Origin: Hyaloraphidium curvatum SAG 235-1
Lineage: Eukaryota; Fungi; Monoblepharomycota
DNA: 64,000 nucleotides
Direction: 5' to 3'
Assembly (NCBI GenBank): GCA_025558095.1
Contig: JAIVFI010000003.1
Location: forward strand, 496,001-560,000
Below are positions 4,603 to 32,570 of the stretch, in pieces. Positions within the stretch are counted from its first letter, which is position 1. Each line of letters begins with the position of its first letter. Position numbers and translations under genes: made by a program. The notes below the pieces were generated by a model. That model saw only the letters and a list, made by a program, of their open reading frames with translations. It ran no database searches and was not told the origin of the DNA.

Positions 4603-5466
4603 ATGCCGGGGTTTCGATTCGATGCCGGGACTCTGGAGGAGATGCGTCGCCACCTCGAGCGAGCCACTCGTGACCAGACAGTTGAAACGCTGCGCGACAG
4701 GCCCGCGCCTTCGCCGGCGTCCGCGCAATTCAACCAAACGAGTGCGACAGTCACGCCGCAAGCAGCGCCGGTGGTCGCCCAAACGGAGCAGGCGACCGCG
4801 ACGGTGACGCCGAAACGGCCTACACGCGAAGCTGCAATTTGCCTGCTATTCTGCGAGGTGGACGAGGTTCCGAGTGTTCTTTACACGGTCAGAAGTCCCC
4901 GACTGAGGCGACATACGGGGGAAATCAGCTTCCCTGGAGGCGTCCGAGACCCCTCGGACGCGTCGCCGCTGGCTGCGGCACTCAGGGAGACCAGGGAGGA
5001 GATTGGGATCAACGAGGCCGACGTTACCGTGCTCGGCGGGCTGCCGTGGCTGCCGGACCTCACTGGACGCATGCGCGTCTACCCCTTTTGCGGCTTCGTC
5101 GACCTCGCGAAGCTCGGGATCCGGCGCCCTTCCGAGATCAAGGGGAACCCCACGGAGGTAGCAAGGGTATTCCACCTCACGGTTCCCCAGCTCCTTGACC
5201 CGAATCGCCGGCGGGATCTGAAGTTTCGCAACCGCGATGTGGCATACACTGCTTTCCGAGCCGACGACGTTGACTTGCTGCCGGAACTGCCCCAGTCGGT
5301 CATTGAGACGGGGGACCTGCGAGCTCTCGCCGATTACGAACACCAGTACGGCTCGACGGTGGTGTGGGGCTTGACCGGCTACGTAACGACGCAAGTTCTG
5401 CGAATCGCTGTGGAACCCGTGGTGGAGCAGTTGCGAGTCGCGCGGGAAGGCAGTGGGAAAGGGTGA
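4603..5466 (+). CDS. Nudix hydrolase, CoA diphosphatase type (NUDT7/NUDT8/PCD1-like); start codon uncertain
   Basis: LYTVRSPRLRRHTGEISFPGG (NuCoA motif), then Nudix box AALRETREEIG and C-terminal VWGLTG. Confidence 0.88.
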   Translation: MPGFRFDAGTLEEMRRHLERATRDQTVETLRDRPAPSPASAQFNQTSATVTPQAAPVVAQTEQATATVTPKRPTREAAICLLFCEVDEVPSVLYTVRSPRLRRHTGEISFPGGVRDPSDASPLAAALRETREEIGINEADVTVLGGLPWLPDLTGRMRVYPFCGFVDLAKLGIRRPSEIKGNPTEVARVFHLTVPQLLDPNRRRDLKFRNRDVAYTAFRADDVDLLPELPQSVIETGDLRALADYEHQYGSTVVWGLTGYVTTQVLRIAVEPVVEQLRVAREGSGKG

Positions 5467-5644
5467 ACGATGCGTGTTGTTCTATGGCCAACATGTGTCA
5501 AACTTTCTCGCTGAAGCTATCCAGTTCACGTCAGGACGAAGCTCCGGATCTTCGGGGATTCGAGTGCTCGTTAAGTCCCAATCCGACAACCGCACGGACA
5601 CCGACTCTAGGCATCATCATTGCCGCTTTAGTTAGAGGGACAAA

Positions 5645-6212
5645 GAGAGCAGTGGACTGTTCCTGTCCAGTTTCGGGCCGCCGCGGCAGGCCGGCCCCAT
5701 CGGGGCTTCGTTCGTTTGCGTCTTTGCCAGCACGAAGAAAAGAAAGCTGGACAGCAGCCCGAGAGAGTGCGATACGGGAGCCATCCGGGCGGCTGCTGAG
5801 CAAGCCCAGCGACACCGCCGTTGCCAAAAAGAAACATTATGCAACGAAGGTCAGTGACCTTCGATATAGACATAAATCTGCGGTGGGGCGCGGGATGAGC
5901 GGTTGCTGGAGCGGCGCGGCGCGGCGGACGCACCTATATAGAACAGATACTACACTTGATCTTAGCCAATAGGCCGAGAGGATGGGCAAAATCTTTGGTG
6001 CGGGCGGTGCATTTGTTGCCGTCCGGGGCCCCGAGCTTCTGGGGGGAGCCGTATTTTTGGGTGCGCAGCAGCCCTCAATCCACCGCTGCGCATGATGACG
6101 GCGCCGCCGGGCCGTCCGGAGGGGTCGGGCGGGGCCGGAAGGTCGCCGCAGGACGGCGTCCGGCGTCCGGGTTGGAGCGGGCCTCGGAGTCCCGGGATGG
6201 AAAGGGACCGTG
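5645..6212. repeat. About 567-bp duplicated unit (U2 gene, ~230 bp upstream, ~100 bp downstream); inverted copy at 21021-21586
   Basis: Near-identical reverse-complement match, with only a few substitutions or indels seen by eye. Confidence 0.95.
5746..5983 (-). ncRNA. U2: U2 spliceosomal snRNA, copy 1, with a 56-nt spliceosomal intron (5878-5933)
   Basis: Reverse complement reads ATCCTCTCGGCCTATTGGCTAAGATCAAGTGTAGTATCTGTTCT, the conserved U2 5' end with the GUAGUA branch-pairing site. After intron removal, stems IIa, IIb, III and IV fold. Confidence 0.95.
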
Positions 6213-8689: not shown

Positions 8690-10561
8690 ATGTCCAGCGC
8701 GCCGATCCCGCCGGCGCTCGTGTGGCTGTCCGGCGCGGCGGCGTACGCGGCGTCGCTGCTGACGCTCGCGACGATGTGGCGGCACCTCAAGAACTACCGG
8801 CGGCCCGACTGCCAGCGGCTGATCTGCCGCATCCTGTGGATGTGAGCCGCGCCTTGTTCTGTGCCGCGGACGTCGCCGACGCCTCGCAGGGTGCCGATCT
8901 ACGCGCTGTCGTCGCACATCGCGCTCACCGCGCCGCCGCCCGTGCCGTCTTACATCGACGCGCTGCGCGACCTGTACGAGGCCTTCGTGCTCTACTCCTT
9001 CTTCGGGCTCTGCGTGGCGCTCATGGGCGGCGAGCGCGAGTTCCTCCGGCGACTGGAAGCGCGGCCGTGGGTCAATGCCGGGGGTTGCGGAGGCAGACTC
9101 GACGTGCGTGCTGCGTTCCGTCGACCCTGGGCTGGGATGACGCGATTTCCGCCGAGCAGATGTCGGATCCCTCGACGTTCCTCCTCATTCGCAGGCTCAT
9201 ATTCCAGTTCGTCGTTCTGAAGCCGGTCCTCACACTGGTCATCTTTGCGATGCAGCTGGCAGGGGCCTACACCGAGGGACGGATCGCGCTGGACTCGTCT
9301 TACATGTGGATCTCGCTCTTCTACAACCTGAGCGTGAGCGCCGCGCTGTGGGGCCTCGTGGTGTTGCTGCTCGCAGTGAAGGACGAGCTGGCGCCGTACC
9401 AGTGGGTTTGCTGCCGGCGACCTCGAGTGACTTGGCCTGAACGGTTCCTCTAGCCCGGTCGCGAAGTTTTTCTGCGTCAAAGCCATCGTCTTCTTCTCCT
9501 GGTGGCAATCTCTCTTGCTCGCGGTCCTCGTTTGGGCCGGCATCATCCGCGGGACGGTGGATTACCCCGCAGGCGTGCTGGCCACGGCGCTGCAGGACCT
9601 CCTAATCCCCTTCGAATGCCTCGTCCTCGCCTTTATCCACATGCGCGCGTTTCCCCCCTCGGATTACGACCCGGCGGCGGGGAACGCACCTCCGCTGTCG
9701 GGGCGCCTGGCGCTGCCGTACGCCTTCCGGGACGCGGTCGGGTTCCGGGACCTCGCCGACGAATGGAAGCACACCATGCTGCTCGGGACCCGCTTCGAAG
9801 GGAGGCCGGCGGGCGAGGCCGAGCGGTACGAGCGGCGTTTGGAAGACGCCGGCGCGCAGGGCCGGCTGAGGAGGAGCCTGGAGAGGGTGCGCGGGGAACA
9901 CGACGGCGGCGAAGGGCGCTGGGTTCTGCAGCGGACCGGGCGGTACTACGATTCCGCTGTCGTCGGTGATCCATCTTCGCCGTCGTTGGCGCAGGCGGAG
10001 GATCCCGACTGGGGCGGGCAGGAGCTCCTACATGCATCGGTCGAGTTTGCGGATCCCGCTGCTGCGTCTGAGGCCAGCACGGAACGGCTCTACGCCCAGG
10101 CGAGGGCGCTGCTATTCGGGGACTACAACTACCCGGTCCTCGGCGGACCCGAGGCGCCGTCTGCAGGGAAGCTGCGGATGGGAGCGGGCGGGTTCGGGTA
10201 TCAGATCGAGGGCGAGGACCACGGGAGGCTAGCGGGCTACGAGGATGCGGCAGTGCTGGAGGTCGAGCCGGAAGATGGTCCGGCGGAGACCGGACGGGGA
10301 CGGCAGGAGCGAAAGGGGCTGCTGGGATCCATGGTGGGGGCGGTGCGGAGCGCCGTCTCTCGCTCTCGATCACGCGATCGAGACTTGGAGGACGAGGATG
10401 ACGCGGATGCCGAGGGCCGCGGGGATGTTCCCCTCCTCGGCCCTGGGAGAGCAAACAATGGAAAGCCCCGGGCGAGCGTCGAGGGCAAACCCGATGTGTC
10501 GCCCATCCTTAGCCCCGTCGACGCAGAGGAGGCTCGGAGGGCTGTTGGATCTCGCGGTTGA
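8690..10561 (+). CDS. TMEM184 / organic solute transporter alpha (OSTalpha, Hfl1-like) membrane protein; introns ~8842-8890, 9104-9159, 9402-9453
   Basis: HLKNYRRPDCQRLICRILWM|VPIYA, RDLYEAFVLYSFF, QFVVLKP, PVAKFFCVKAIVFFSWWQ are typical of this family. Confidence 0.9.
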
Positions 10562-10662: not shown

Positions 10663-13600
10663 CTACGCCGAGGCGATAAAGCCTGGCAGTCCGGGGACCG
10701 CCTTGTCCACTATCCGTTTTTCGTCCGCCGACAGACCATCGACCGGGCCGTCGACCTCGACCACGTCCAGAGAAACCAGGTTCAGCTGTTTGCAGATGTA
10801 GTCCATGTTGTCCTCGACCGTCTTGCGCTCGTCGAACTTGAGAGTCCGGTCCAGCGCGGCCACACCAGCAGTCTCGGTCTTTGACTGTCGAATGCGGGTG
10901 AGTGGAATCCTGGATTCTGCCAACTGAATAACATACCCGAGTCTCCATGGCGAAGGGAAAAGCCAGTTTCTCCTTCATCAGGCCGGCCTTGGCCAGGATC
11001 TCCTTGATGTCGCGCTTGAATGTGTTGGTGGACTCGTCGTACTCTTTGCGCAGCTCCTCCAGGACCTTGTCCTGCCACGCCGGGAAGCTCTTGGCGAGGT
11101 ACAGCTTGCCCTTGCGGGGACCCTTGGTCGCCTCCGCCTGTCCGCCTTTCTTGGCGGCCTTGCGCGCGGCGAGCGACTCGGCACTGCGGATCTCGCCGAG
11201 CAGACTGCGGAGGTAGTTTGCGGCCGCCATCACAGACTCGTCGTTTGGTTGCGGCTTGGGCAGGGGCTGGTCAAGAACCGTCGAAGGCTGGAAAAGGACA
11301 AAGTCAGTTCTGTGCCACGACCATCCCCCAAACACCGCGGCCTCAGGGGATCAGACAGTGTGAATGAACAATCCCACGAAGGCAGGGCCCCGTCAACCAA
11401 CAAGATATCGTCCTTTCCCAGCACTCCAACCGTAGTAGCACGTACCTTCTTCAGCACCTCCCGCCAAATGTACTCGCTCCAGTGCGGGGCAATCGGCGTC
11501 AGGAGCAGGGTCTGCCACTCGATGAACCGCTCAACGAGGTCCTTGTGCAGGCCGACAGCCGCATCGTCCCGGCTCATTGCCGAGCTCACGCTCAGGTTGT
11601 AGTCCCGGTACCAGTCCTTGGCGGCCTGGAACTCATACAGGCCGTTCTTCAGCGCCTCCTTGTACATCATGCCGTCGTATGCCTTGGCGGCCGCCTCGGC
11701 GAAGCGGTTCATCTCAGCCTCGAACACGCGGTCATTGAAGTTGTAGGGCCCGGTGCGGAGCTTGCCCTCGGCAATCTCCTGCAGCGCCTGCTCCACCCAT
11801 TCCTTCTGCGTGAACAGCCGGAGGATGGCGGCGTTGGCGTTCGCCACCTGGAAGTTGGCATCGTCCGAGAAATCGCCGGCGTCGGCCAGAGCAACACGCG
11901 TCGCATCGGCGCCAAACTCCTCGACCGCGTCCTCCAGGGTCATGAAGTTGCCCGTGGACTTGCTCATCTTCTCCGCGTTCAACAGCAGGTGGCCGTTGGA
12001 ACGGATGGCCTTGGGCCACTTCTCCTCCGGGAAGATTGCCACGTGGTTGTAGATGGCAAAGGTCAGGTGGTTCGGGATCAGGTCCTTGCCCGAGCACCGC
12101 AAGTCCATGGGATACCAGTACTGGAACTCGTTCCGCAGCGTCTCCAGCTTCTCCTTCGGGATATCACTGGAGCTGGGGAAGGGCGCCGAGTCTATCAGGA
12201 TGTACTCCCAGACCTCGTCCGTCATCTGCTCGGGGGTGATGCCGAGTGGTCCAGGCTTGGAGCCGTCCAGCGTGCCCTCTGCGCGGAAGCTCTCTTTCAG
12301 AACGGAAGCTGCGCCTACACATGACCAGTAACTTACGGTGCAGGAGGTGCGAAACAGTGTAGTACGCCATGTAGATGGTAGAATCGGACAAGCTCTCGAT
12401 GAGCCACTCCTTGTCCCACGGCAGCCTGCTGCCCAGCCCGAAGCTCCTCGAGCACGCCCATTCGTGCAGCCACCCGAGGACGCTGACGAACTGGTTCCGG
12501 GTCTCTTCGCCGTACGTGTTCAACCTGTCCAGGCACTTGCGCGCGAGGTCCTTCCAGCTCTGCTCGCCGTAGTCGAGGTACCACTGATCGACCAGCGCGG
12601 CAACGCACTCGTCTCCCGAGCGCGACATGACGAGGTTCTCGGGCTCGCAGTATACGATGGCTTCACCGCTTGCCACCATGTCGTCCTTGATCAGCGGCTT
12701 CGCGTCTTGAACGGGCCTGCGCGAGACAGCACGTTAGTGGTGCGGTCAGGACTTCCTCCCCCCGCGCCAGCCAGAGTGCGATCAGAACGTCTTAATCTCC
12801 CCACAAGGTTTCGGAAGAACGAAAGTTATTTTTGAATGTGTCTCATCGTGTCGCCGCTGTGCCCGGTCCGGTCCCCACGATCACTCACTTTCCCTTGTAC
12901 TTGCCGATCAGCATGGTGCCGCCATAGAACCCGACCTTGTAGACTGCCTCCTTTGCCTGCGTAAGCTGCAGCTTGTCTTTCGGACTCTTGATCTTGAAGA
13001 TCTCGCAGGCCTTGACCGCGGCCAGGGTGCCGTACTCGGGCGTGTCGATAATCTCAATCGGGGGAAGGAACGGCTCGACCCAGGACGGATCGACGTTGTA
13101 GTAGGCCGGCTTCTTGACCAGGTCTGTCAGGGTGATGAAGTCGTCCGGCGAATCCGAAGGCACGGAGGTGACAACGCCGGTACCCTGTAGGCGAAAACTT
13201 TAGGACGACGGACACCAGACAACCGCCGCCCACCCACCTTCGTGCTCAGAACACCCTCCATCGGCACGACATAGACCTTCTCGTACTTCGTCAGCGGTGC
13301 CTTGATGGGCACTCCCACCAGATCCCAGCCGGTCAGTTCGAGCACCTTCTCCACCTCTCCGCGCGCTCGGTCCCTCCCAAACAAGCTCTGGTAGGCCATG
13401 TTCCTCGCAGCCCTCTCCGTGACGATCCAATACTCGTCTCTGTCGGCCGCGTGGGCCTTGTAGACACCGTATGTGATGTCAGGACCCACGTAGCAGTTGG
13501 TCTGGCCGTACATGGTCTCGGGCCTCAGCGTGGCCGCGACAAGGTAGACCTTGGCATCCCGCCCCATGGAGCCTTCAAGCATCTCCTTCGCCAGCTTCTC

Positions 13601-14951: not shown

Positions 14952-16917
14952 ATGAGCGCGCCTCCGGGCTATCAAGGCGCACCACCGCCCGGCTACGCGC
15001 CTGCATATCCTCCTCCACCGCCTCCGGGGACCGGTTATGGGACTTCCGCGCCGCCTTCGTACGCCCCGGGCCCGCCGACAGCAGGCCCCGCAGAGCCCGT
15101 CTCGTGCGTTCACCATGGAGCTTGGACCCTCCTCCACAATCTTAACCCTCGTCGACGACAGCAAAGTTGAACTCAGATTCAGCTGCGAGAACCTGCCCAA
15201 CTTGGACGTGACATCGAAGAGTGATCCCCAAATCTTCGTTTTCCTAAAGACTCTGCTCCCGGGCCAGCTGGGCCAGACCGCCCGGGAGGCGTTTGTGGAG
15301 CTTGGCCGGACGGAAGTCGTCAAGGACAGCTTGAATCCTCGGTTCTCGACGCCATGCGTCATGGACTACTACTTCGAAGCTGTGCAGAACTTGCGCGTGG
15401 TCGTCGTGGACTCCGATAGCTCCAACCCTTCGGCCGGCTTGACTGCCCATGATTTCCTTGGGTACTGCGACGTGACCGCCGGTGAGAGTCGGGGAACTGT
15501 GCGAAAGCCTCATTGGCCAAAGTGTGACCTAAGCCGCAGGGAACATTGTCGCCTCGGGAAAGGCTAGCGCTTTCGAGCGCAAGCTTACGATGCAGGTTCC
15601 GCCAGGCATGTCCGTCAAACCGCCTTCTACTGCTCTCGTGAACCGGGGCGGGACCCTCAAGATTCAGGTGGAGGAGCTGGACGTCAACGGGGCCAAGCAG
15701 TCGGTCGTGCTCCGGCTGAGGGGATCCAAGCTCGATAAGAAAGACATGTTTGGAAAGTCCGACCCGTTTCTGGTCATTTCCAAGGCGAGGCCGGACGGTT
15801 CCTTTGCGGTCGTGCACAAGACCGAGGTGATCAAGAACACGCTGGACCCCACCTGGCAACCGCAGCGGCTGAAGATGGACGTGCTCTGCGGGGGCGACGT
15901 GAACCGGATGCTGCGCTTCGAGTGCTTCGATTGGGACAAGGACGGCACCCACGACCTGATTGGCATCTTTCAGGCTCCGCTGTCGGCCGTGACGCGCGGT
16001 GCAAGTTTCGCGCTCATCGAGCCCAAGAAGCAGGCCAAGAAGGGCAAATCGTACACCAACTCGGGAACCATCATTGTGGACGACGTACAATTCCACCGGG
16101 AGTTTTCGTTCCTGGACTACATCACCGCGGGAACGCAGATCGAGCTGGCAGTGTCCATAGACATGACTCAGAGCAACGGGGATCCGAACCATCCGGCCAG
16201 CCTACACTACCGCAACCCGAATCCCCGGATCCCGAATCCGTACCAGATGGCCATAACTGCGATTGGACAGGTGCTCGAGCCCTACGACGCCGACGGGCGG
16301 TTCCTTGCTTACGGCTACGGCGCGAAACTGCCGGACCAATCTGTCAGTCATTTTTTCCCTCTAGGGCTGGCGGCGGGGCCCGAGGTGCAGGGCGTGCCGG
16401 GCCTTTTGGACGCCTACAACCGGGCCCTTGGCACCGTGCAGCTCTGGGGCCCGACCAACTTCTCGAACACCATCAACGCCATTGGGGCTTGGGCCAGAGG
16501 ACCCAATCCTGGCGAGACTGTGCTCTCCCGCTATTGTATCCTCCTGATCATCACGGACGGTGCGATTACCGATCTTGACCAGACAATTCGGGCCATTGTG
16601 GACGCCTCCTACCAGGCCCTGTCGATCATCATCGTCGGCGTCGGGAATGCGGACTTCTCGACAATGGACGCGCTTGACAGCGACGATAGGAAGCTGCAAA
16701 GCGGTGGGAAAGTTGCGGAGCGCGACATTGTCCAGTTTGTCCCTTTCCGGTGAGCCTGAACCCGTGGTACTCGAATGCCTAGCGTGATTTTCGCATCATT
16801 GGCAGCCGCTTTAATCCCAACGACTTCCATGCCCTTTCGACCGTGACGCTGAAGGAGGTGCCGGGGCAGTTCATGGCATATGTTGGGACAAGGGGGCTGA
16901 AGCCTTTTGGGGCGTGA
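14952..16917 (+). CDS. Copine (C2A-C2B-vWA), paralog 1; introns 15104-15161, 15482-15539, 16750-16805
   Basis: KVELRFSCENLPNLDVTSKSDP, LDKKDMFGKSDPF, IDMTQSNG, ILLIITDG, SIIIVGVG, RDIVQFVPFR. Confidence 0.95.
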
Positions 16918-18108: not shown

Positions 18109-20375
18109 TCACATTCCCACCAATGTGTTCAGTGCCGAGTGCACCTCGGACGGGTCGTCCTGGTGGCCCTCGGCCGTGTCCGTCAGCGCCTCGACTTGTG
18201 CCGAGTGGAAGTTGATGCCCTGAGCGGGCGGCAACTCGTGACCGTAGTTGATTGTTGCAGAGACGCGCCGCATGTACGCCTGCAGGGGATGTCGGTCGAT
18301 CTCGATCGGGGGTCGCGGTAGGACAAGATCGAGTCCAACTCACCTTCCAGCTGTCGCTGCCGCCCTCCCTGCCTCCACCGCTCTCCTTTTCCCCGCCAAA
18401 GGCACTCCCAATCTCGGTCCCGCTCGTGGGAACGTTGACGTTGACGATGCCGCAGTCGGAGCCCATCACAGAGGTGAAACGGAACGAGGCCCGCATGTTG
18501 GTGGTAAAGAGCGCCGACGCCAGGCCCTGGGGCACCGAGTTGTTGATTTGGATCGCCTCGTCAAGTTTCTGCAGTGTGGCGAGCAGTTTAGAGGAATGAT
18601 AGTCACGCCGGTCCAAGACGTCAACGAACCTTGAACTTGGCGGTGTAGAGAATGGGAGCAAACGTTTCGCGCTGCACAATGAGCGCGAAAGGGTCGATCT
18701 TGATGATGGCGGGCCTGACAAAGAGGCCACCCTTGAGGTCGCCAGGGAGCTCCAGCACGTCACCGCCAAAGATGACCTCCCCGCCCTCCTTCTTGGCCTG
18801 CTCGATGGTCGCACGGAATTGGTCCACCGACTCGGGCTTGTGCAGCGGGCCGCACATGGTCCGGGGCTCCAGAGGGTCGCCAATACGGATCTGACGGTAG
18901 GCGTGGACGAGGGATTCAACAAAGGCGTCGTACGAGCTCTGCTGGACAAGCAGGCGGCGAGTCGATGTGCAACGCTGGCCGGTGCTCCCGATGGCGGAAA
19001 AGACGGTGCCACGCAGGGCAAGGGCCATGTCTGCGTCGTCCATGACAACTGGAGAACGAACGGTCAGCGATCACGGCGGTGAGGAATGCGGGGCAGAACC
19101 AACTGATGGCGTTGTTGCCGCCCAGCTGGAGCACCGTCCTGCCGAACCGCTCCTGGACGACCACGCCGACGTTGCGGCCCACAGCGGTGCTCCCCGTGAA
19201 GCTGACAAGCTTGTAGCGATCGTCCCGGCACAGGGCTTCGCCGATGTCGGCCGTGCCGGTACACAGCGAAGCGACCGCGGGGTCGACCTTGTGGCCGATC
19301 AGGACTTTGGAGATGAGCTTGGTCATGGCGATGGCAACGAGGTTGGTGGAGAGCGCGGGCTTCCAAACGGTGGTGTTGCCGCAGACGAGGGCGACGGACA
19401 TGTTCCACCCATAAACAGCGCAGGGGGAGTTGAAGCTGGATAGCGTTTTTGCGTCCATCAATGCGAGTGGCGGGGACCGCGGGCCCGCGCGACCCACGTT
19501 GTGATGATGCCGACCACTCCGAGCGGGTGGTAAGCCTCCAGGAGAAGGTGCTGCTTGCGCTCGCTGGGGAGCGTTTTGCCCTCGAGCTTCCTGCTCAGCC
19601 CCAGTGCGAGCTCGGTCATGTCGATAAACTCCTGGACCTCGCTCTCGGCTTCCGCGAGAAGCTTGCCGACCTCGAGAGAGATGAGCCTTGCCAGCTTCGG
19701 CTTGTGGAGGCGCAAGGTAGCGCCAATGTCGCGCACAACAGCACCGCGGGTCGGCATGGGGGTCTAAAGGTGGAACGGTCGAGGACACCGGCGGTCAGCT
19801 GTCAGTTCACACGCAAAAGCCGAAATCAGGTAAAGGCTCCCGAGAGCAGCAATGTCCGGAGCTCCGGAGCTGGACCACTCAAATCAACGCTCCCAGCTTT
19901 AGCTCATTGGACCCCTGCCGTCGTGGCGTCCCTGATTCCGTCAGCAACCCACCCGCTTCCAGCGATCCCACGCCGCGCGTGCCCGCTTGGAGACCGCGTC
20001 AAGATCCTCCTTGCTGCCCGTTGCAACCTCGGCGATCACGCGGCCCGTGCTCGGGTTCAGGCAAAAGACGCGCTCCCCGCTGCCCCGCCATTCGCCGTCG
20101 AACACGCCCTGGTTCGCCTCTGCCAGGCCCAACGAGGACAGCAGCTCCGCGTGGTGGGCGTACTCCGAGACCAGGGTATCCGATGGCGGGACGGCGGCGT
20201 AGCCGCGGACGGCGGGCCTCGCCGGGGCGGGCGCGATGCGGGGCACCTGGCGAGGCCGGCCGGCCGCGGCCCACGGCCTCGCGGGCGCCGCCGCCGCCGC
20301 ATGCAGTGTGCGAGCAGCAACCCGCGACGGGATGCGCAGCAGCCGCGACGCGGCAGTCGTCCGCGGGAGGGACAT
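18109..20375 (-). CDS. ALDH7A1: Aldehyde dehydrogenase family 7 (antiquitin / alpha-aminoadipic semialdehyde dehydrogenase), with mitochondrial-type presequence
   Basis: EVQEFID, LPSER, FNSPCAVYGWN, SFTGSTAVG, LQLGGNNA, GSTGQRCTSTRRL, SDCGIVNVN, EIGSAFGGEKESGGGRE; Arg/Ala-rich N-terminus. Confidence 0.93.
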
Positions 20376-21020: not shown

Positions 21021-21586
21021 CACGGTCATTTCCATCCCGGGACTCCGAGGCCCGCTCCAACCCGGACGCCGGACGCCGTCCTGCGGCGACCTTCCGGCCC
21101 CGCCCGACCCCTCCGGACGGCCCGGCGGCGCCGTCATCATGAGCAGCGGTGGATTGAGGGCTGCTGCGCACCCAAAAATACGGCTCCCCCCAGAAGCTCG
21201 GGGCCCCGGACGGCAACAAATGCACCGCCCGCACCAAAGATTTTGCCCATCCTCTCGGCCTATTGGCTAAGATCAAGTGTAGTATCTGTTCTATATAGGT
21301 GCGTCCGCCGCGCCGCGCCGCTCCAGCAACCGCTCATCCCGCGCCCCACCGCAGATTTATGTCTATATCGAAGGTCACTGACCTTCGTTGCATAATGTTT
21401 CTTTTTGGCAACGGCGGTGTCGCTGGGCTTGCTCAGCAGCCGCCCGGATGGCTCCCGTATAGCACTCTCTCGGGCTGCTGTCCAGCTTTCTTTTCTTCGT
21501 GCTGGCAAAGACGCAAACGAACGAAGCCCGATGGGGCCGGCCTGCCGCGGCGGCCCGAAACTGGACAGGAACCGTTCACTGCTCTC
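21021..21586. repeat. Inverted copy of 5645-6212 (U2 transcription unit)
   Basis: Reverse-complement identity with 5645-6212. Confidence 0.95.
21249..21486 (+). ncRNA. U2: U2 spliceosomal snRNA, copy 2, with a 56-nt spliceosomal intron (21299-21354)
   Basis: Conserved U2 5' end; intron GTGCGT...GCTCAT...CCGCAG. The spliced ~182-nt product forms IIa (ATATAG/CTATAT), IIb (CGAAGGTC/GACCTTCG), stem III and stem IV with an ATAGCAC loop. Confidence 0.95.
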
Positions 21587-21761
21587 GTTGTCGTAGAGAA
21601 ATGGTGCTACGTGCCCTCGTTGGATGGGCTGTCCGTGCTGTTGTCGGGGGGCCGGGTTGCGAATGCGCTCGAGCCGCACGAGGTTGGCGTTTCTTCGTAT
21701 TTGATGAATGAGCAACTTCCATGTTTCATATTCAAAAAGCAATACAAATGTGGCAGCCAAA

Positions 21762-23430
21762 TCACGTCGCAAACGAGTGGATGCAGAGGACGTTGTTGAA
21801 CCCGTCCGACAGGAGGAAGTCCGGCCCCACGTGGACCGATCCGAGATCTGTGCGGGTCGCGGCATGGTCAGCATCGCCAGCACGACATCCAGAGCCGACC
21901 GAGGCGGGGGAACCCACATGCGGTATGCCTCCAGATAATCCACCCGTCGTCCCGCATCAGGTCGTCCCCAACAAGCCACACCTTGACCGCGCCGTCCGTC
22001 CCTCCCGTCGAAAGTCGCCCACGAGCGAGGTCGAGGTCGATCGACATGACGGTGCCGTGGTTGTGCGCGCGGAAGGAGCGCACGGGGTCGATTGAGGGCG
22101 CCGCGGGGCCGGCGGGGAGGGCGAGGGACCACAGGCGGAGGCGGCAGTCGTCGCCGCCCGAGGCGAGGATACCGCGCGCGGGGTCGCGGCGGAGGGAGCG
22201 CACCGGGCCCCCGTGGGCGCCCTGGATGGCGGTTTCGGGGGCGGAGGGCGGCAGGGGAGGGAAGGATGCCAGGGGCACGCGGATGACGTGTATCGAGCCG
22301 TTGGAGGTGCCGAGCACCAGCAGATCAGCGGAGCAGAGGAAGGAAGTGAGGCGGCCGTTAAGGGTGGGTAGGTCGAGCCGCTTGGTGTCACGGTCCGGGT
22401 CGTAGCAAGGTGGCGAGGGCGTTGCCGCACCGTGCGGCGGACGGGGCGGCAGAGTGATCCTGTGTGCCAGCACAACTCCGTCCAAGCCGGCCGAATAGAC
22501 GACTTTTGTCCTCGCTGCCCGGGTTACCAAAGCCATCCTCGAGGCGACCACACCCGAGTCGCCGGCATCAAAGGAAACAGCGGCATCCCAGCCCTCGAGA
22601 TCGGAACCGGCGAGGTCCATGATTTTGACGCCCACGACGCCCCTGGAGTGGCCCGCTACGACGGCGAGCTCCTCGCCCGTCCACGCGTCCCACACGCGAA
22701 CGGAGCCCGAGCAGCCCGCGGCCACCACGTCCCCGTCGCAGTCCAGGCACGTCGTCTCGGTGGGCTGCCCTTCGTATGTCACCTCGATCTCGCCCGATAT
22801 CGCGTTGATGAGGTGCAGCGGCCCGGCATAGGTTCCCAGGAGTATCATCTGCGGCATGGAGGGCAGAGGGAGAAGCCTGCGCACATAATCGTCCAGAACG
22901 TGGATCGTGCGTGTGCGGAATGAGCCGTCGGCCCACATGGCCTCGCGACGCGCCTCTGCGACGTGCAGGCGGCCGTACAGCGCCTTGAACGGCGAGGGAG
23001 GCGCGATCGCCGGCGAGGGCAGGTCCCCGAGGGCCTCTGCCGCCTCCGCCTGGCCTGCCGCATCGCCTTCAATTTCGCTGTCGTCCTCGAAGTTAAGCGG
23101 CACCGAGCGACGCGCGCCGGGGCTCGCGGGTGCGGCGGCCCTGCCGCTGCCCGAGCCGAAGCGGCGCTTCGCGTCGCCCGGCAGCCCCGCCGAGCGCGCC
23201 GCGCGCGGACGGCCGACGGGCGACGGCGGCTCCCTGCCGGCCAGCGCCGCGCGGCCCCACCGCCGCGCGATCTGCTCGCTCCAGAAGAGGTCCGACGCGT
23301 CGAGCAGCGACAGCGCCCGGCACGTCGCCGCGAGCCGCGCCGCGGACTCGGCATCGAGAAAACCCCGCGCAAGGTGCAACACGAGGTCCGGCGGTAAGTC
23401 TAGCAGCACGGTCGGGGGCTCAGGCTCCAT
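21762..23430 (-). CDS. F-box/WD40 repeat protein; intron 21848-21917
   Basis: N-terminal F-box (LLDLPPDLVLHLARGFLD...LAATCR) and WD repeats (GSVRVWD, GHSRGV, LASGGDDCRLRLW, STGGTDGAVKVW). Confidence 0.88.
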
Positions 23431-23614: not shown

Positions 23615-25536
23615 TCACGGCTCGCCGATCGGCTTCAGCCCGCGCCGCGTCGCATACTGCACGAGCTGCTCCGGCACCTCAGCTAGCGTCGCAGCAGACA
23701 GCGCGCCAAAGTCGTTGGGATTGAAGGCTCTGAACGGGACGAACTGAACGCAGTCCCGTTCGGCCCTCTTGCCGCCCGCCTGAAGCACTGCGTCGTCGCT
23801 GTCCAGCAAATCCATACTGCTGAAGTCCGCACCACCGACGCCGACGATGATGATCGACATTGGAAGCGCGGAGGCGTCGACGACGGCCCTGAGGGGAGGG
23901 TGAGGAGAATGACAAGTGGCTCCCCGACCTCCACACCCACTTTATCGTCTGATCCAGGTCCGTGATGGCGCCATCCGTTATGATGAGCAAGATGCAGTAC
24001 TTGCGCAGGTGCCTGTCGCCGGGGGGCATGGAGGACCGTACCCATTGCCCGATCGAATTGATCGTCGTGGCGAAGATCGTAGGTCCCCAGAGCTGGTTGC
24101 CGTACAGTGACCTGTGCGCCAAGAACCGTCAGTAGCTCGACAGGCGCAGCCGATAGGGACCCACTTATTGTACGCCTCCATCAGCCCCGCCACCCCGATC
24201 ACCTCGGGCCCCACCGCCCCGTTGAGAGGGAAGAAGTGGCTGACAGTCCCATCGGGCAGCTTGGCACCGAAGCCGTAGGCGAGGAACCGCCCGTCGGCGT
24301 CGTACGGTTCGAGCACCTGGCCGACGCTCGACAAGGCACGCTGGTACTCGTTCAGGATCCGCGGATTAGGGTTGCGGTAGTGCAGGCTGGCCGGATGGTT
24401 CGGGTCACCTGTTGGTCGATCGGTGGTTAGATTCCGGGTGCAAAGATCGATGCAGAAGCCATGCCGTTTGATTGCGTGAAATCTATAGACACCGCCAGCT
24501 CGATTTCCGTGCCCGCCGTGATGTAGTCGAGGAAGGAGTACTCGCGCTGGAAAGAGACATCGTCCACGATGATGGTTCCCGAGTTGGTGTACGATTTGCC
24601 CTTCTTGGCCTGCTTCTTGGGCTCGATGAGCGCGAACGTGGCTCCCCGGGTGAAGGCCGACAGGGGCGCCTGAAAAATGCCGATCAGGTCGTGGGTGCCG
24701 TCCCGGTCCCAATCGAAGCACTCGAAACGCAACATCCGATTGACGTCGCCGCCGCAGAGCACGTCCAGCTTCAGTTTGAAGGGCTGCCACACCGGATCAA
24801 GGGTGTTCTTGATCACCTCGGTCTTGTGGACCACAGCAAACGCGCCGTCGTTGCGCGCCTTGGAAATGACGATAAACGGGTCGGACTTCCCGAAGAAGTC
24901 CTTCTTATCCAGCTTGGATCCCCTCAGCCGGAGCGTGACGGACTGCTTGGCGCCTCCGGCGTCGAGCTCCTCCACCTGCACGCGGAGCGTCCCCGGCCGA
25001 GACTGCGCCGAGGCCGGCGCGGGCTTCAGGTCCATCCCGGGAGGCACCTGCATCGAAAACTTGCGCTCGAACGCGTTGACCTTCCCAGAAGCCACCAAGT
25101 TTCCTAATTGCACGTCGACATGACCAAGGTAGTCATGGTCCCGCAACGGTGCCGTTGGCGAGGGGTTATCCACGTCGAGGCACACGATCCTCAGGTTCTG
25201 CACGCTCTCGAAGATGTAGTCCATGACGATCGCTTTCGCGAAGCGGGGGTTGAGCGAGTCCCGAATGACCTCCGTCCGCCCGATCTCAAGCAGCACCTCG
25301 CGCGCCGTCTGTCCGGGCGGGCCGGGACGCAGCTGGCGGAGGAAAACGAACAGCTGGGGGTCCGATTTGCTCGTGATATCAAGATTGGGCAGCTGCGAGC
25401 AGCTGAACCGCAGCTCGACTTTGGCGGCCGGCGCAGCCGGCCCGGGCCCAGGCGCGGAGGCATTGTAGGACGGCAGCCCTGCGGTCGGGGGTGGCGCCGC
25501 GGGGTACGGCGTGTAGGGCGGGAGATTGGCCGACAT
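23615..25536 (-). CDS. Copine, paralog 2; introns 24409-24464 (GC-AG), 24112-24164, 23889-23940
   Basis: Same C2-C2-vWA motifs as paralog 1, with long near-identical coding stretches. Confidence 0.95.
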
Positions 25537-25859: not shown

Positions 25860-28800
25860 TCACGACATAGATACTGTAGATTCACCGTCCCTCGCGGGGA
25901 GCCACCGAGACGAGCCCTTCGCCTCGGTGATGAGCTGGTCCACGGCGTCGCCGAGCTGCAAAAGCAGCGCGTCAATGTCCACGCCCTCGTCCCCCAAGGA
26001 GCCGTGCTCGTCCGCGGCGCCGAGCCGCGAGTTGGCGGATGCCGCGGAAGAGGCCAGCACCGTCTCGGTGGCACCGATTGTGGAGGCGTCCCGATCCACG
26101 GAGAAGGCGGCGGAATGCTGTGACTGCGAAGGCCGCCGGCCGCCCAGGTCACTGCCCGCCAGCCAATGAAAATCGCCCGACTGCGAGTCACGGGCGTGGA
26201 CCCCGGCGTCGTGAACTACCGGAGCACCTCTGCCGCCCTCTCCGCGGCTTGCAACACTGGCCGCCTCGGTCGAAGGCTGGGCCGAGGTAGCTTCGGGCTC
26301 GAATGCTCCGAGAACTCGAGCCAGAACGACGGGATTCGTTCCGCGGTCGGCGCCGTCCGCGCTTGTCGGCGACCATTTGCTGGAGCTCCCTCCGTCAGCG
26401 CCATTGCCTAGGCCGTTCAATGTGCCTCCAGAAGAGGAGGTGCCGATGCTTCCGCCGGTATCGGCAGGGGTGAGCATTGCGGAGGCAAGAACGGTACCGT
26501 AGCCGGGGCTCCGCAGGACCCTCGGCAGCGTCGCAGACGGCGTGACTGTCGGTGTCGACGCGGCGGAGACGACCGAGTTATCGAAATGCAGGGCAAATAG
26601 CGCACTGGAGATGGCCAGCAGAGTGGCATCGACCGTGGCCGGGTCCGAAGGGGTATTGAAGATGTCGAAGCTGTTTGGATCGAGAGGATTAATCCGATAG
26701 ATCCAACGAGGTCTGCGACATCGTACCTGAAAGAGACTTTCGACCCGCTCGACCCGTCGCCGTCGAAGATCCCGCTCTTCTTCAACGTTTCCATCACTCT
26801 CCGCCCAACGTTCCGAAGCTCCTCCGCGTTGGACTCGGCGGAGTCTTTCAAAGCGCAAACCAGTTGGTATCTCTGTTTGAGATCCGCTTGATCCAACGCG
26901 GATCCATCCGTGTCGATCGTCTGGCTCGCGTTGTCGCTCGTGGACCTGTTCCAAACGAAACGCTCGCCCGCCGAAGCACTCCGGGGCAAGCTCGGCTCGT
27001 CGTAGGCTGCAGCTTCGGCCTTGTTTCCTTCGAGCTCTGCTGCCATCTGCGCGTTGCGGGAGGCCGTGGCGGCCAGACGCGCCTCGAGTTCCCGGAGCTC
27101 GGCTTCTCTGTCGGCAATCTCCTGCTCTTCGGTTCGGAGCCGTTCCCTGAGCTCTTCGACAGCAATGAGCAGCTCCGGACCACGAGCAGCCGCCGCCTCG
27201 ACTTCTTCCTCAAGCTCCACCACGCGCAAGCCGCTGATCCGTGCCGCTTCCTGCATGACACGGAGGTCCGACTCCAGCGACTCGGCCTTGCCCCGCAAAT
27301 CTGCCGCCCTGCGGTCCTCCTCGAGGATCGCCGCCTCGATGTTGGCAATATCGGCTTCCGCGGTGGTGACGATGAGCTTGGCGGCGACCAGCTTCTCCCG
27401 GAGATCGGCCACTCGGCGCTCGGCGCTCGACTTGAGGACCAGCTGGCTCATCAGGTCCGATTCGAGAGCGGCCACTTCGGCCTCGAGCGCAACCGTCTCC
27501 GTCCGAGCCACGCTCAGGGCAGAACTCGCGGAGTCAAGATGTGCCTTGACCTCGGTCGCATCGGCAGATTCCGCCCCATTTGGCGACTCGTCGGGAACGG
27601 AAAGCGCCGCTCTCTGCTCCAGTTGCGCGCTCGCAGAAGCTGAAATAGGCGAATCTGCTGCCCTCGCCGCACCAAGACTCTTGGCGTTCGCCAGTTCGAG
27701 CTCAAGGGCTTCAGTCCGTGCGGCGCTTTCCGCTGCCCGCGCCGCTTCGATGGCAAGCTCGGCTTCCAGCGCAGCTGCAGCTGCCGCAAGGCGCTTGGCT
27801 GCATCGCCGGAAGCATCTAGCCGCACGCGCAATTCTCCAACGTGCGCTTGAGCGAGGATCTGGCGAGCTTGTTCAGCCGCGAGTTCCGCCTCCAGTGCTG
27901 ACGTCTCCGAAACGCGAGTTTTGCACTCCTCCTTGACCGCCAGAAGTTTCGGCTCGAGATTTGCTTTACGCGCAGCGGCCTCCGCGACGCGCGACTCCTC
28001 CGTCACCAGTTCGGCTTCCAGCTCGGCAAGCTCCGACACAGCACGCTCCGAGGCTGCTTTCGTATCCTCGATCCGGATCCGAAGCTCCTCCACCTTGGCC
28101 GCAGCCTCCCGTTGCCGCTCCGCCTCGGTCAAAAGAGCCGCTTCCTGCCTCCCGTGCTCATCCTCCAACTCGTCGGCACGCTTCCTGGCCGTTGCGAGCT
28201 TTTCTGAGGTTTCGGCGACCCGCGATTGCGTTTCAGCGAAAGCGGACTCCATTGCCAAGAGGTCCGATCGAGTTCTTTCTGCCTCTCGCCGCGCCTCCTC
28301 AATCACAGTTTGCAGCTCCGTTACGCGCGTTTCGGCGTCGGCCTTGCGGGCCATCTCGGCGGCCAACGCTGCCTCCAAATCCGTCAGCTCCAACAAACAG
28401 GCATCCGCCGCCTCCTTGTTGCCGAGAAGATCCTTCGCAAGCACGTCCTTCCGGGCAACAGCCTCGTCGAAACGCGTCCGTTCTTCGGTGACTTGCTCTT
28501 CGAGCGCAGAAAGCTCGAGGGCGACCTTTGCGCTCTCATCCCGTGCTGCAGAAAGGTCGCCCGCAAGAATTTCCAATGCGGTTTGCCGGGTGGCGTTGTC
28601 GTCCTTGATGGACAGCAGCTCCTTCTCGAGCGAATCCTTCCGCACCGCTGCATCGCCCGCTTTGGAACGCTCCGATTTCATCTGCGCCTCGATTGCAGCC
28701 GTATCAGCAGCTGCTTTCCCAGCATCCTCGGTCGCTGCCGCCAGGGCAGCCTTCAACGCGACCACGGCCGCAACTGCTGTGGCAGCATCGTTCTTGACCG

Positions 28801-31800
28801 CTTCCAGCTCGTTCTCGAACGACGCCTTCTGCTCCGAGAACTCTGCGATCCGCGACCGCTCCTTGGAGAGCTGTGCTTCAAGAGCCGATACCTGCGTCGA
28901 CAGTTTCTCCGCTTCGACGAGAGTCGTGCGAAGATCGGCATCCAAAGCTTCGATAGCGGACGCCTGTGCGGCTGCCTGGTCCCGGCAAGCCTGCAGCTCC
29001 TGCTCAAGGGCGTCCTTGCCCGCAGAGATATCCGAGAGCCGCGACCGCTCCGAGTCCAGTTGCGCTTCCAGAGCGACAGAGTCTGGCGCAACGATCTCCT
29101 CTTCAACGACCAGCTCACGCTCAGGACTCAAAGAAGCGGCTTCGGATGCCAACCCGGCGATTTCCTTCGGTGCAACAGATGGAGCGATCTGCAACTGCGA
29201 GTCCCTTAGCCTTCCTTCCCGCATCGCACGTGACGAAAGCAGCCTCACCTCCAGTTGTGTAGCTCGTGCAGAAACTTCTAGTGCATCTGTCGTCGCCACG
29301 TCCAAAACCGACGCCTCCAATTCCAAGCCGGCTTTACGCGCGGTTGCTTCGGCGACCCGCGACCGCTCCAATGCCAGTTGCTCCTGGAGTGCCTGCGCGT
29401 CGGCGGAGAACTTGGCCACTTCATCGCGAACAGCACCGAGAGCTGCTTCCGCGACAGCTACTTGGGCAACGAGCGACGTAACCTCGTCCTTGCAGGTCTG
29501 CAGCTCCGCGGCGAGAACCCCCTTGCGCCGGTCAGCTTCGGCGGCATTTGACCGTTCCGCGGCGAGCTGCTCCTCCAAAGCGGCAAGGTCCGTTGAAACC
29601 CGTTGCGCTTCGTCCCGCGCGGCGAGCAAAAGGACCTCTGAGTCGGCAAGTTGCGATGTCTTCGCGGCCACGTCTTCCCTGCACGACTGCAACTCGTTCT
29701 CGGCAGCTTCTTTCCGCTGTGCCACGTCGGCGAGGTCTGCGGCGCCCTTCTGCCTTGCGTCCTCGATCTCTTTAACAGCTGCCTCGAGCGCGGCAAGCTC
29801 CAAAGCACGGGTCGCGAGCTCATCCTTCGATACCCGGAGCTCCCCGGCGAGAACATCCTTGCGCTGCCCGGCTTCGACGGCAGCTGATTGTTCCGCGGCA
29901 ATCTGCACCTCCAACCCGACAATGTCGGCGGCAATTTTCTGCGCTTCGTCCCGCGCGGCCAGCAAAGCGGCCTCCGAATCGGCAAGCTGCCTTGCCTTTG
30001 CCGCGGCGTCGTCCCTGCAGGCTTGTAAATCCTTCTCGGCGGCCTCCTTCTGTTGCGCCACATCGGCGAGATCCGCAGCAGCTTCCTGTTTCGCGTCCTC
30101 GATCTCCTTGACCGAGGCCTCGAGCGCGGCAAGCTCCGACGTCCGCGCCACGAGCTCGTCCTTGGATGTCTGTAGCTGGTCCTGCAGCGTCCCTTTGCGG
30201 GTTTCGGCTTCGGCAGCAGACGACCGTTCCGCGGCTAGCTGCTCCTCCAATCCGGCAAGGTCCGCGGAGACCTTCTGCGCTTCGTCCCGCGCGGCCAGCA
30301 AAGCTGCCTCCGAATCGGCTAGCAGCAACGCTTTTGCGGCCGCATCGTCCCTGTAGGCCTGCAAATTCTTCTCGGCGGCCTCTCTCCGTTGCACCATGTC
30401 GGCAAGGTCCGCGACGGCCTTCTGTCTCTCGTCACCGATCTCCTTGACGGCAACCTCGAGCGCGTCGAGTTCCGACGTCCGCGCGGTGAGCTCCTCCTTG
30501 GACGCTTGCAGCCGGTCCTGAAGTTCAGCCTTGCGCTTCTCGGCCTCAGCAACCTTTGCCCGCTCCGATGCCAGTTGCTCCTCCAACCCAGCGGTGTCCG
30601 ATGCGGATTTATCGCCCTCCTTCTGCGCGTCCTTCAGCGCAGCTTCCAGAACCGCCTGCGATTCGGCAAGCTGCGACGCCTTCGCAGCGGCTTCGTCCTT
30701 GAATGCCTGCAGGTCCTTCTCGACGGCCTCTCTCCGTTGCGCCATTTCGGCAAGGTCCGCGACGGCTTTCTGCCTCTCGTCCTCGAGCTCCTTGATCGCG
30801 GCCTCGAGAGAAGCAAAGTCCGACGTCCGCGCCGCGAGCTCCTCCTTGGACGTCTGCAGGTCCTTCTGCAGCGCCACCTTGCGGGTTTCGGCCTCGGCTG
30901 CCTTTGCCCGCTCCGACGCCAGCTGCTCCTCCAGCGCCGCCATGTCCGATGCGGATCTGTCGGCCTCCCGCTGCGCGTCCCTGAGCGACGCTTCCAAAGC
31001 GGCCACGGCCGCCAGTCCGGCCGCCGCCGCATCCTGCACCGACTTGAGCCGGTCCGCCAGCACGTCCTTTTCCCGCTCGGCAGCCTCGGCCCGCGCCTGC
31101 TCCGCCGCGAGCGGCCCGCGCAGGTCGTCGGCCGCAGTCGCCGTCTGATCGGCGTGATCCCGCGCCGTCCGCAACGCCGCGGATTGCTCCTGCACGCGGA
31201 CCTCGGAGTTCGTGGTGCTGCGTGCCTCTGAGGCGAGCCCTGCGAGGCCGGCGACCACGGTAGCACCTCCGACGACCGCGGCAACCGATCCCAAAGTGGT
31301 TGCGCCGCGCGATTCCGCGGAACTGCCGGCTTCCTGGGCTGCCTTCAAGGCTTCCTGCAGCGCCGCGCTCTTCCTTTCCGCGTCAAGTTCGGCCTGCACG
31401 GCGGCGAGCGCGAAGGCGGTGTCGCCCGGCCGCGAGACGTCTGGAGCCGGGGAGGAGACGAACTCGGTCGCGGCGGAGGAGGGTGCCGGGGATATCGGCG
31501 CGTCCGAGTGCTTGGGGGTTGCGGGCTCGGGAACCAGGAGGCCGGGCTCTTCCGGCGCGGCTTCGGGGAGGTCCGGCGCGAGGCCGCGCCCCGAGTTCGT
31601 GGCGGTGGCAATGCCGCGCCCCGAGTTCGTGGCGGTGGCAATGATGGCTGTGACGACGGGAGCTGCCTCTGAAGCCGAGGACGTTGGCGCAGCGTCCAAG
31701 CTTTCGGTCGCGACGATATGCGCGGGCCGAGCACCGGTCTCCGCCTCTGCCTTGAGCTTCCCGTACGAGTGCTGAAGGTATCGTACGCCGACTTCTAGAC

Positions 31801-32570
31801 CGGCCAGCCGTGCGCGGGCGGTCCGCAGCTCATCCTTGGTCCGCTTGAGTTCGTCACCGGCATCGGGCGGGGCCAAAGCCGCGGCGTCCCCGGGAGAGGG
31901 CGGCTCCACGTCCACCAGAGGAAGATCATGCCCAGTTGCAAGCGACCGTTCGGCTGCATTCACGTCGATTTGCAAGTCGGCGACTGGCTCCGCGTCCGAG
32001 GAGGAGATTCCGCCGGCGAGTTCGTCGCCGACGTCGAGGGAACCGGGAAGGATCAGCGGCGTCCCGGACTTTGCGTCCAGCAGGCCGCGCAGCACGACCT
32101 GGCGATGCCGACGGGCGTGAGAAGGCAGAGACGGACATCATCGGTCGAGAACACACCTCTTCCTGAAGCAACAGCGCGACCAGCGCCCCGGCTGCCCCGA
32201 CCAGCAGCGCCGACCACACGCCCGACGCCGTCCCCGACCCCGCGTGCCCGGCAGCGACCCTCAGCGTGCCCAGCTCGGTCTCCAGCGCGGCACGGCCCTC
32301 CTCTGCGCGCGCCAGCCGCGCGGCCAGCGAGCTCGAGCGGTTGCGCTCCGCGATGAGCAGCAGCTCGAGCTGCACGGCCTTGGCGTTCGTCGGCAGCGGC
32401 GCGGGCGGCGTGGCGGGGCCGCGGCGCGCGACCAGCGAGAGCGCGAAGCCGAGCAGCAGGAGCGCGGAGATCCACAGCGTCGGCGGCGACCGCGGCGGCC
32501 GCGCGGCAGTCCGCCCCGCGGGCCGCCGCTCGGGGCGCGGCGCTTCCGTCTCCGCTCGATCGGCCGCCAT
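25860..32570 (-). CDS. Very large (>2000 aa) coiled-coil protein with N-terminal transmembrane segments; 3' exon structure approximate
   Basis: 1892-codon open frame rich in A/E/L/K heptads; upstream exon with hydrophobic WISALLLLGFALSLV and VWSALLVGAAGALVALLL. Confidence 0.8.
29480..30935 (-). repeat. Internal tandem repeat of ~336 bp (112 aa), four or more copies, in the coiled-coil gene
   Basis: Recurring LEEQLAxER...LQTSKEEL..RTSEL..LE...KEIED..QKA.ADLA...EKDLQA..DDAAAK..QLADSEA.LLAARDEAQK. Confidence 0.9.
31583..31643. repeat. Perfect 30-bp tandem duplication (IATATNSGRG x2)
   Basis: GCCGCGCCCCGAGTTCGTGGCGGTGGCAAT occurs twice in tandem. Confidence 0.95.

Follow-up and report, generated by a model that had tools for sequence, protein, structure and literature searches.

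The gene for U2 small nuclear RNA (snRNA) of Hyaloraphidium curvatum SAG 235-1 is present twice in the window analysed here (64,000 nt of contig JAIVFI010000003.1), and in both copies it is interrupted at the same place by a 56-nt insert, very probably a genuine spliceosomal intron. On the basis of sequence comparison, we consider it highly likely that both copies are working U2 genes, each split by one major-class (U2-type) intron, and that they would be transcribed, spliced and assembled into snRNPs. The sequence-only reading had described a U2 gene with a GT-AG spliceosomal intron at a single locus, 21249-21486 (copy A, + strand). This locus is real and its coordinates hold, but a second, inverted copy with an identical intron at 5983-5746 (copy B, - strand) had been missed. 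Three features count against our explanation, namely a non-consensus Sm site, a weak branch site and the 80% GC content of the intron. In turn, the intron reading is made much stronger by the unrelated canonical introns that occupy the same site in U2 genes of Dothideomycetes.

In its unspliced form, copy A matches the Rfam U2 model (RF00004, gathering threshold 46 bits) at 21247-21490 (+) with 110.4 bits, and the alignment places 64 nt where the loop of stem IIa normally has 8 nt. Scored against RF00004 one at a time, exon 1 (21249-21298, +, 50 nt) covers model positions 1-52 with 55.9 bits and exon 2 (21355-21486, +, 132 nt, 3' end approximate) positions 53-192 with 47.3 bits; hence, the two matches abut at 52|53 with neither gap nor overlap. 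Together they amount to 182 nt, the ends of the mature RNA being approximate. Exon 1 carries stem I, the regions pairing with U6, the invariant branch-point recognition sequence GUAGUA (21279-21284, +) and the 5' strand of stem IIa (21293-21298, +), which ends in AG (a proto-splice-site context) and forms six of six Watson-Crick pairs with 21363-21368. The predicted intron occupies 21299-21354 (+), an assignment consistent with the local splice-site matrices and with same-site introns of other fungi. Exon 2 (+) begins with the 8-nt IIa loop (21355-21362) and the IIa 3' strand (21363-21368), followed by stem IIb (21370-21386), the IIc partner strand (21390-21395), the Sm site (21401-21408) and stems III and IV, including the U2B''/A' loop. 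When the intron is disregarded, a 6-bp stem IIa with a loop of 8 nt, stem IIb and the alternative stem IIc can all form, the last by pairing of 21357-21362 with 21390-21395 (five Watson-Crick pairs and one GU). Relative to the Rfam consensus, stems IIa and IIc have changed in a compensating manner in exon 1 and exon 2 alike; the two exons have thus kept their ability to pair, which points to selection. A protein-coding reading of the loci was rejected, as the antisense ORFs over U2 (21260-22132 and 5364-5972) are absent from the called genes.

Copy B likewise scores 110.4 bits (match at 5742-5985). Its exon 1 (5934-5983, -) is identical to that of copy A, its putative intron (5878-5933, -) is 100% identical over all 56 nt, and its exon 2 (5746-5877, -) differs at one position, in loop IV. 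Both copies belong to a duplicated unit of ~570 nt (5639-6206, -, inverted relative to 21026-21592), which extends ~220 nt past the 5' end of U2 and ~105 nt past its 3' end, and outside which the flanks are unrelated. The common upstream block (21026-21248, + in copy A) is a probable Pol II snRNA promoter, and the downstream block (21487-21592, +) probably holds signals for 3'-end formation. The two units differ at eight of 568 columns, one of which falls within loop IV of the RNA, while the intron has none. These differences, together with the unrelated flanks, rule out copy B as an assembly artefact. The identity of the intron implies that it is older than a recent duplication, or that the copies have been homogenised.

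At the Sm site, a U5GG tract is correctly placed yet preceded by C, where the consensus PuAU4-6GPu has A, and this substitution is found in both copies (21401-21408, +; 5831-5824, -). It is the kind of feature expected if both were silent or defective paralogues (pseudogenes) while intronless U2 genes elsewhere supplied the cell. The 64 kb of genome examined and the position of the copies, which are not syntenic in relatives and thus recent movers, would be compatible with this too. From these 64 kb, the sequence-only claim that U2 must itself be spliced can be upheld only as a possibility. We did not find U2 at the syntenic loci examined in Logan sample SRR23967301 (L001, L070), in L002 or in Gonapodya (L071, L072), so that neither a close relative nor Gonapodya offers an orthologue within Monoblepharomycota for comparison. 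Yet all stems are intact and bear compensating changes, neither truncation nor decay is seen, the upstream and downstream blocks are conserved between the copies, and each of the two loop IV variants is also seen in U2 genes of other fungi (L004, L017), which makes the loss of function of both copies very unlikely. The viral contigs searched contained no U2, and a search for transcripts via a neighbouring gene returned the genome record only.

The reading of the insert as an intron in working U2 genes is supported by its likeness to the mRNA introns of the window, 23 of which we mapped with the help of annotated proteins, the annotated lengths of genes and spliced alignments guided by homologues (the eight mapped LeuRS introns total 654 nt, as the annotation implies). 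Their median length is 56 nt, exactly that of the U2 insert, as had been noticed from the sequence alone. The insert starts with GTGCGT (21299-21304, +), contains CTCAT at 21333-21337 with a putative branch A at 21336 (-19) and ends in CAG (21352-21354). On the local splice-site matrices it reaches 14.6 bits, more than the leave-one-out median of the local introns (13.1 bits, n = 23), and only six of the 127,888 56-nt segments of the window score as high, the two U2 inserts among them (background 4.7e-5 per segment, or a chance of ~1.4e-4 when the three equivalent registers created by a repeated AG are allowed). Local donors are dominated by GTG, with GTGGGT the commonest (10/23), and GTGCGT, worth 8.2 bits in the U2 insert, is the donor of two of the 23, at 15104-15161 (annotated copine) and at 9104-9159 (in one of two ORF solutions). 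CAG ends 21 of the 23 introns, and the CGCAG of the insert is the commonest acceptor pentamer (5/23); both donor and acceptor of the insert lie above the local median. Local branch sites are degenerate, CTCAC occurs among them, and many mRNA introns are as poor in this respect as the insert. Its CTCAT forms four of six pairs (two Watson-Crick, two GU, two mismatches) with the branch-recognition sequence of the same U2, and the position of its A is within the local range of -11 to -23. The GC content of the insert exceeds that of the local introns (59 +/- 5%, maximum 73%), while its fold is ordinary (MFE -14.1 versus a shuffle mean of -13.4, sd 2.3).

It had been claimed that only GT-AG excision rebuilds stem IIa. 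In this form the claim is too strong, as any 56-nt deletion within the loop restores the loop length; however, among the GT..AG pairs available there, 21299/21354 is the sole one that leaves 8 nt, the others leaving 12, 36 or 40. The same geometry was found in intronless U2 controls from assembly contigs of marine-invertebrate symbionts, of which 11 out of 14 distinct sequences show a 6-bp stem IIa with an 8-nt loop, all with CAG immediately before the loop. Contigs of unclear host (L026, L035, L037, L042, L048, L052, L054, L056, L057, L061 and L067) were excluded from the controls. U2 genes of eukaryotes, frequently arrayed in tandem, were also noted in 46 stretches of contigs from prokaryotic MAGs (L024-L069), where they represent host contamination.

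Retention of the insert in the mature RNA as an expanded IIa loop is extremely unlikely in light of these data. U2 RNAs do tolerate large expansions elsewhere, as in the fungal domain of Saccharomyces cerevisiae, and a weak branch site combined with high GC could slow splicing. Nevertheless, the loop has 8 nt in intact controls, both ends of the insert carry typical local splice signals (~1e-4 by chance), stem IIa is absent from the predicted fold of the unspliced RNA (pairing probability zero), and the same-site inserts of 12 other genes, described below, vary in length and share nothing but splice signals. Other kinds of insert were also considered and rejected: a self-splicing intron (too short, no special fold, no match to the Rfam group I or II models), a tRNA-type intron (no tRNA found), and a tandem U2 duplication or a copy of a local intron or element, since within the window the insert matches only its twin, other matches being of 14 nt or short G+C-rich runs.

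The sequence-only reading had proposed comparing the intron position elsewhere, and this comparison revealed unrelated introns at the same 52|53 site in the U2 genes of Dothideomycetes, which reinforces the spliceosomal origin of the Hyaloraphidium insert. Our metagenome scan, which fixed only U2 exon 1 and the donor and is hence conditioned on this site, gave 20 loci, comprising 11 distinct complete U2 genes, one fragment and one cut contig. Two loci were left out of the counts: L009, which looks 5'-truncated, and L010, cut by the contig end. The U2 fragment of L009 (1269-1298) lacks the 5' end and exon 2 and is probably a remnant. Two named Dothideomycete genomes, Extremus antarcticus (L073) and Coniosporium uncinatum (L074), carry the 52|53 intron as well; L004 clusters at 90% with the former and L018 with the latter, L007 encodes a CreA protein closest to Pezizomycotina, and the hosts are ascomycetes wherever this was tested. 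With exon 2 placed without use of the AG, all 12 of the complete inserts at this site have YAG as their last three nucleotides and CTRAY at -10 to -14; they span 46-129 nt. Between the orthologues L018 and L074, the exons are identical at 190 of 194 positions and the same-site intron at 33 of 53, which, judging from the sequences, is the classic pattern of conserved exons around a diverged intron.

As in Hyaloraphidium, removal of the intron from the Dothideomycete U2 genes (L073, L074, L004-L023) restores a 6-bp stem IIa with an 8-nt loop. Unlike in Hyaloraphidium, their introns have a strong CTRAY 10-14 nt from the acceptor and 31-51% GC, several of the genes are preceded by TATA-like boxes, and extra introns are frequent. 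Further introns were found in six of the 11 genes, at approximate model positions 8, 10, 12, 25, 68 and 158; those near 8, 12, 68 and 158 are canonical extra introns seen in L007, L008, L011, L016, L018 and L074. The U2 gene of E. antarcticus has three introns in all. This three-intron organization is seen in L073 (~13090-12740, -) and L004 (1352-1474), where the middle intron, of 52 nt at about model 25|26, ends in CGG rather than YAG in three assemblies and thus has either a non-canonical acceptor or marks a defective copy. Downstream of U2 in the ascomycete loci L005-L008, L011 and L015-L019, we observed a T-run followed by CAT, with a TTGAGG-A-rich motif 20-30 nt further on; this pattern, which may be a 3'-end signal, is absent from the Hyaloraphidium copies. 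Genes with several introns or a long one score 53-109 bits against Rfam. As intron-split U2 genes lose score or escape annotation, surveys of spliceosome components may undercount them.

With regard to the origin of the intron, a single entry in the Hyaloraphidium lineage, prior to the ~570-nt duplication and at a ready-made proto-splice site formed by the conserved YAG that closes stem IIa, is most likely. Since this YAG precedes the site, any intron inserted there receives a good exon context, which, along with the scatter of introns along Dothideomycete U2, makes independent gain likelier than one ancient intron. From these sequence data, the same site probably acquired its intron independently in Dothideomycetes. 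To our knowledge, the U2 genes of model yeasts are intronless. A single intron inherited from the common ancestor of fungi and lost in most other lineages is a possible, though doubtful, alternative. It draws on the exactly identical position in two phyla and on the 5' intron of U3, which shows that introns of non-coding RNAs can persist widely in fungi (PMC5832005). Yet, the Hyaloraphidium intron shows no sequence similarity to any of 11 others (z from -1.1 to 1.5), weak evidence in itself as introns diverge fast, the Dothideomycete genes gained introns at six other positions, and 52|53 is a natural AG| proto-splice site.

Whether independent gains in Monoblepharomycota and Pezizomycotina make 52|53 a true hotspot is, in our estimation from sequence, an evenly balanced question; conditioned on this site, the scan cannot show a preference for it over other positions. 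If the hotspot is genuine, fungi would have in U2 a third small RNA that is frequently split, its genes carrying as many as three introns each and no fewer than seven positions being used, and U2 would provide a natural series for testing models of intron gain. Lying outside the catalytic core, the site would then also speak for the capture of proto-splice sites rather than for reverse splicing into the active site. An origin near the catalytic core, which the sequence-only reading cited as a frequent explanation of snRNA introns, finds no support here: the intron sits where stem IIa meets its loop, 14 nt beyond GUAGUA and outside the U2/U6 catalytic helices, and the introns of U2 in other fungi are scattered along the RNA.

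As for the fate of the transcript, Pol II would produce a pre-U2 of ~238 nt, in which existing U1 and U2 snRNPs could recognise the GTGCGT donor, the degenerate CTCAT and the CAG acceptor, as they presumably do in the short mRNA introns nearby. Splicing would bring back stem IIa with its loop of 8 nt and the switch between IIa and IIc, and the resulting U2 of ~182 nt would then join the Sm proteins. Such a pathway poses no chicken-and-egg problem, because snRNPs are inherited. It seems unlikely that pre-U2 splicing is a regulated, rate-limiting step by which U2 is tuned to spliceosome activity in the feedback loop that the sequence-only reading considered: U2 is a stable, inherited RNA, donor and acceptor are stronger than the local median, and many local mRNA introns have branch sites just as poor. 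The weak branch site and GC-rich sequence would suit such control, which has also been suggested for U6 paralogues (PMC5855946). Constitutive, housekeeping splicing of pre-U2 is most likely.

A U2 intron as such is of a known kind, described in 1993 from the yeast Rhodotorula hasegawae. The intron of that gene is reportedly 60 bp long and located 'immediately downstream' of the branch-recognition domain. In both fungi an mRNA-type intron thus lies 3' of the branch-recognition sequence of U2. R. hasegawae, however, is a basidiomycete, and in H. curvatum the intron lies 14 nt downstream of that sequence, where stem IIa gives way to its loop. The R. hasegawae finding (Takahashi et al. 1993, PMID 8355704) is cited in PMC5855946, where introns of U1 and U5 (Takahashi 1996) and of U6 are likewise reviewed. 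According to that review, fungal U6 introns (S. pombe; Canzler et al. 2016) resemble the present ones in having canonical splice signals and unrelated interiors, in numbering up to several per gene and in repeated independent gains. Unlike U2, a Pol II snRNA, U6 is transcribed by Pol III, and whereas U6 introns are concentrated around the catalytic core, the U2 site is outside it. Fungal U3 snoRNA introns offer a further parallel, being spliceosomal introns in a capped, small structured RNA (PMC5832005). Among early-branching fungi, the authors of that survey encountered no U3 gene with an intron, and they named U3 and U6 as the sole small RNAs in which interruption is common. By comparison, the U2 intron described here comes from an early-diverging lineage, and in Dothideomycetes introns in U2 seem to be frequent. 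Figure 1 of PMC2396436 also marks some snRNAs as intron-bearing.

A copine ORF of the window is 100% identical to a protein of H. curvatum, and the corresponding locus of GCA_025558095.1 matches window positions 4952-26753 without a difference. The early-diverging position surmised from the DNA alone agrees with the assignment of H. curvatum to Monoblepharomycota, and the impression that such an intron was unreported there also stands: neither the snRNAs of Hyaloraphidium nor a wide occurrence of U2 introns is the subject of any paper that we found in the searchable literature, most subscription papers falling outside the search. As far as this literature shows, the occurrence in an early-diverging fungus, the shared cross-phylum site and the multi-intron U2 genes are new. 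With them, the known range of snRNA introns reaches an early-diverging phylum of fungi, and U2 introns, for which a single yeast is usually cited, would seem to be common in some ascomycetes. The same-position introns in Hyaloraphidium and distant moulds suggest a recurrent, apparently unreported insertion site, whose distance from the catalytic centre bears on whether such introns originate by active-site reverse splicing or by proto-splice-site capture.

Several other features of the window were observed. A snR54-like box C/D snoRNA (12780-12853, -; 23.6 bits, below the Rfam gathering score) is nested in a LeuRS intron (12888-12717), and the same guide element is found in the Gonapodya LeuRS gene (L071, 5804-5879, -; 38.1 bits, also below the gathering score). 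Two copine paralogues (14952-16753, +, and 23615-25536, -) form an inverted pair with 77% protein identity, and their introns lie at different places; a single copine, adjoining LeuRS, is present in the relative L001. In the stretches at about 24477-24421, 25030-24977, 18343-18280 and 20413-20120 (all -), the second copine seems to hold a GC-AG intron, and some annotated introns look doubtful, namely an in-frame 54-nt intron in copine 2 and, in ALDH, an acceptor at 18301 where homologues favour 18280 and a first intron of 294 nt. Finally, the region 26417-32095 (-) contains an ORF of 1892 aa of coiled-coil type with internal repeats of 336 nt and 147/189 nt.
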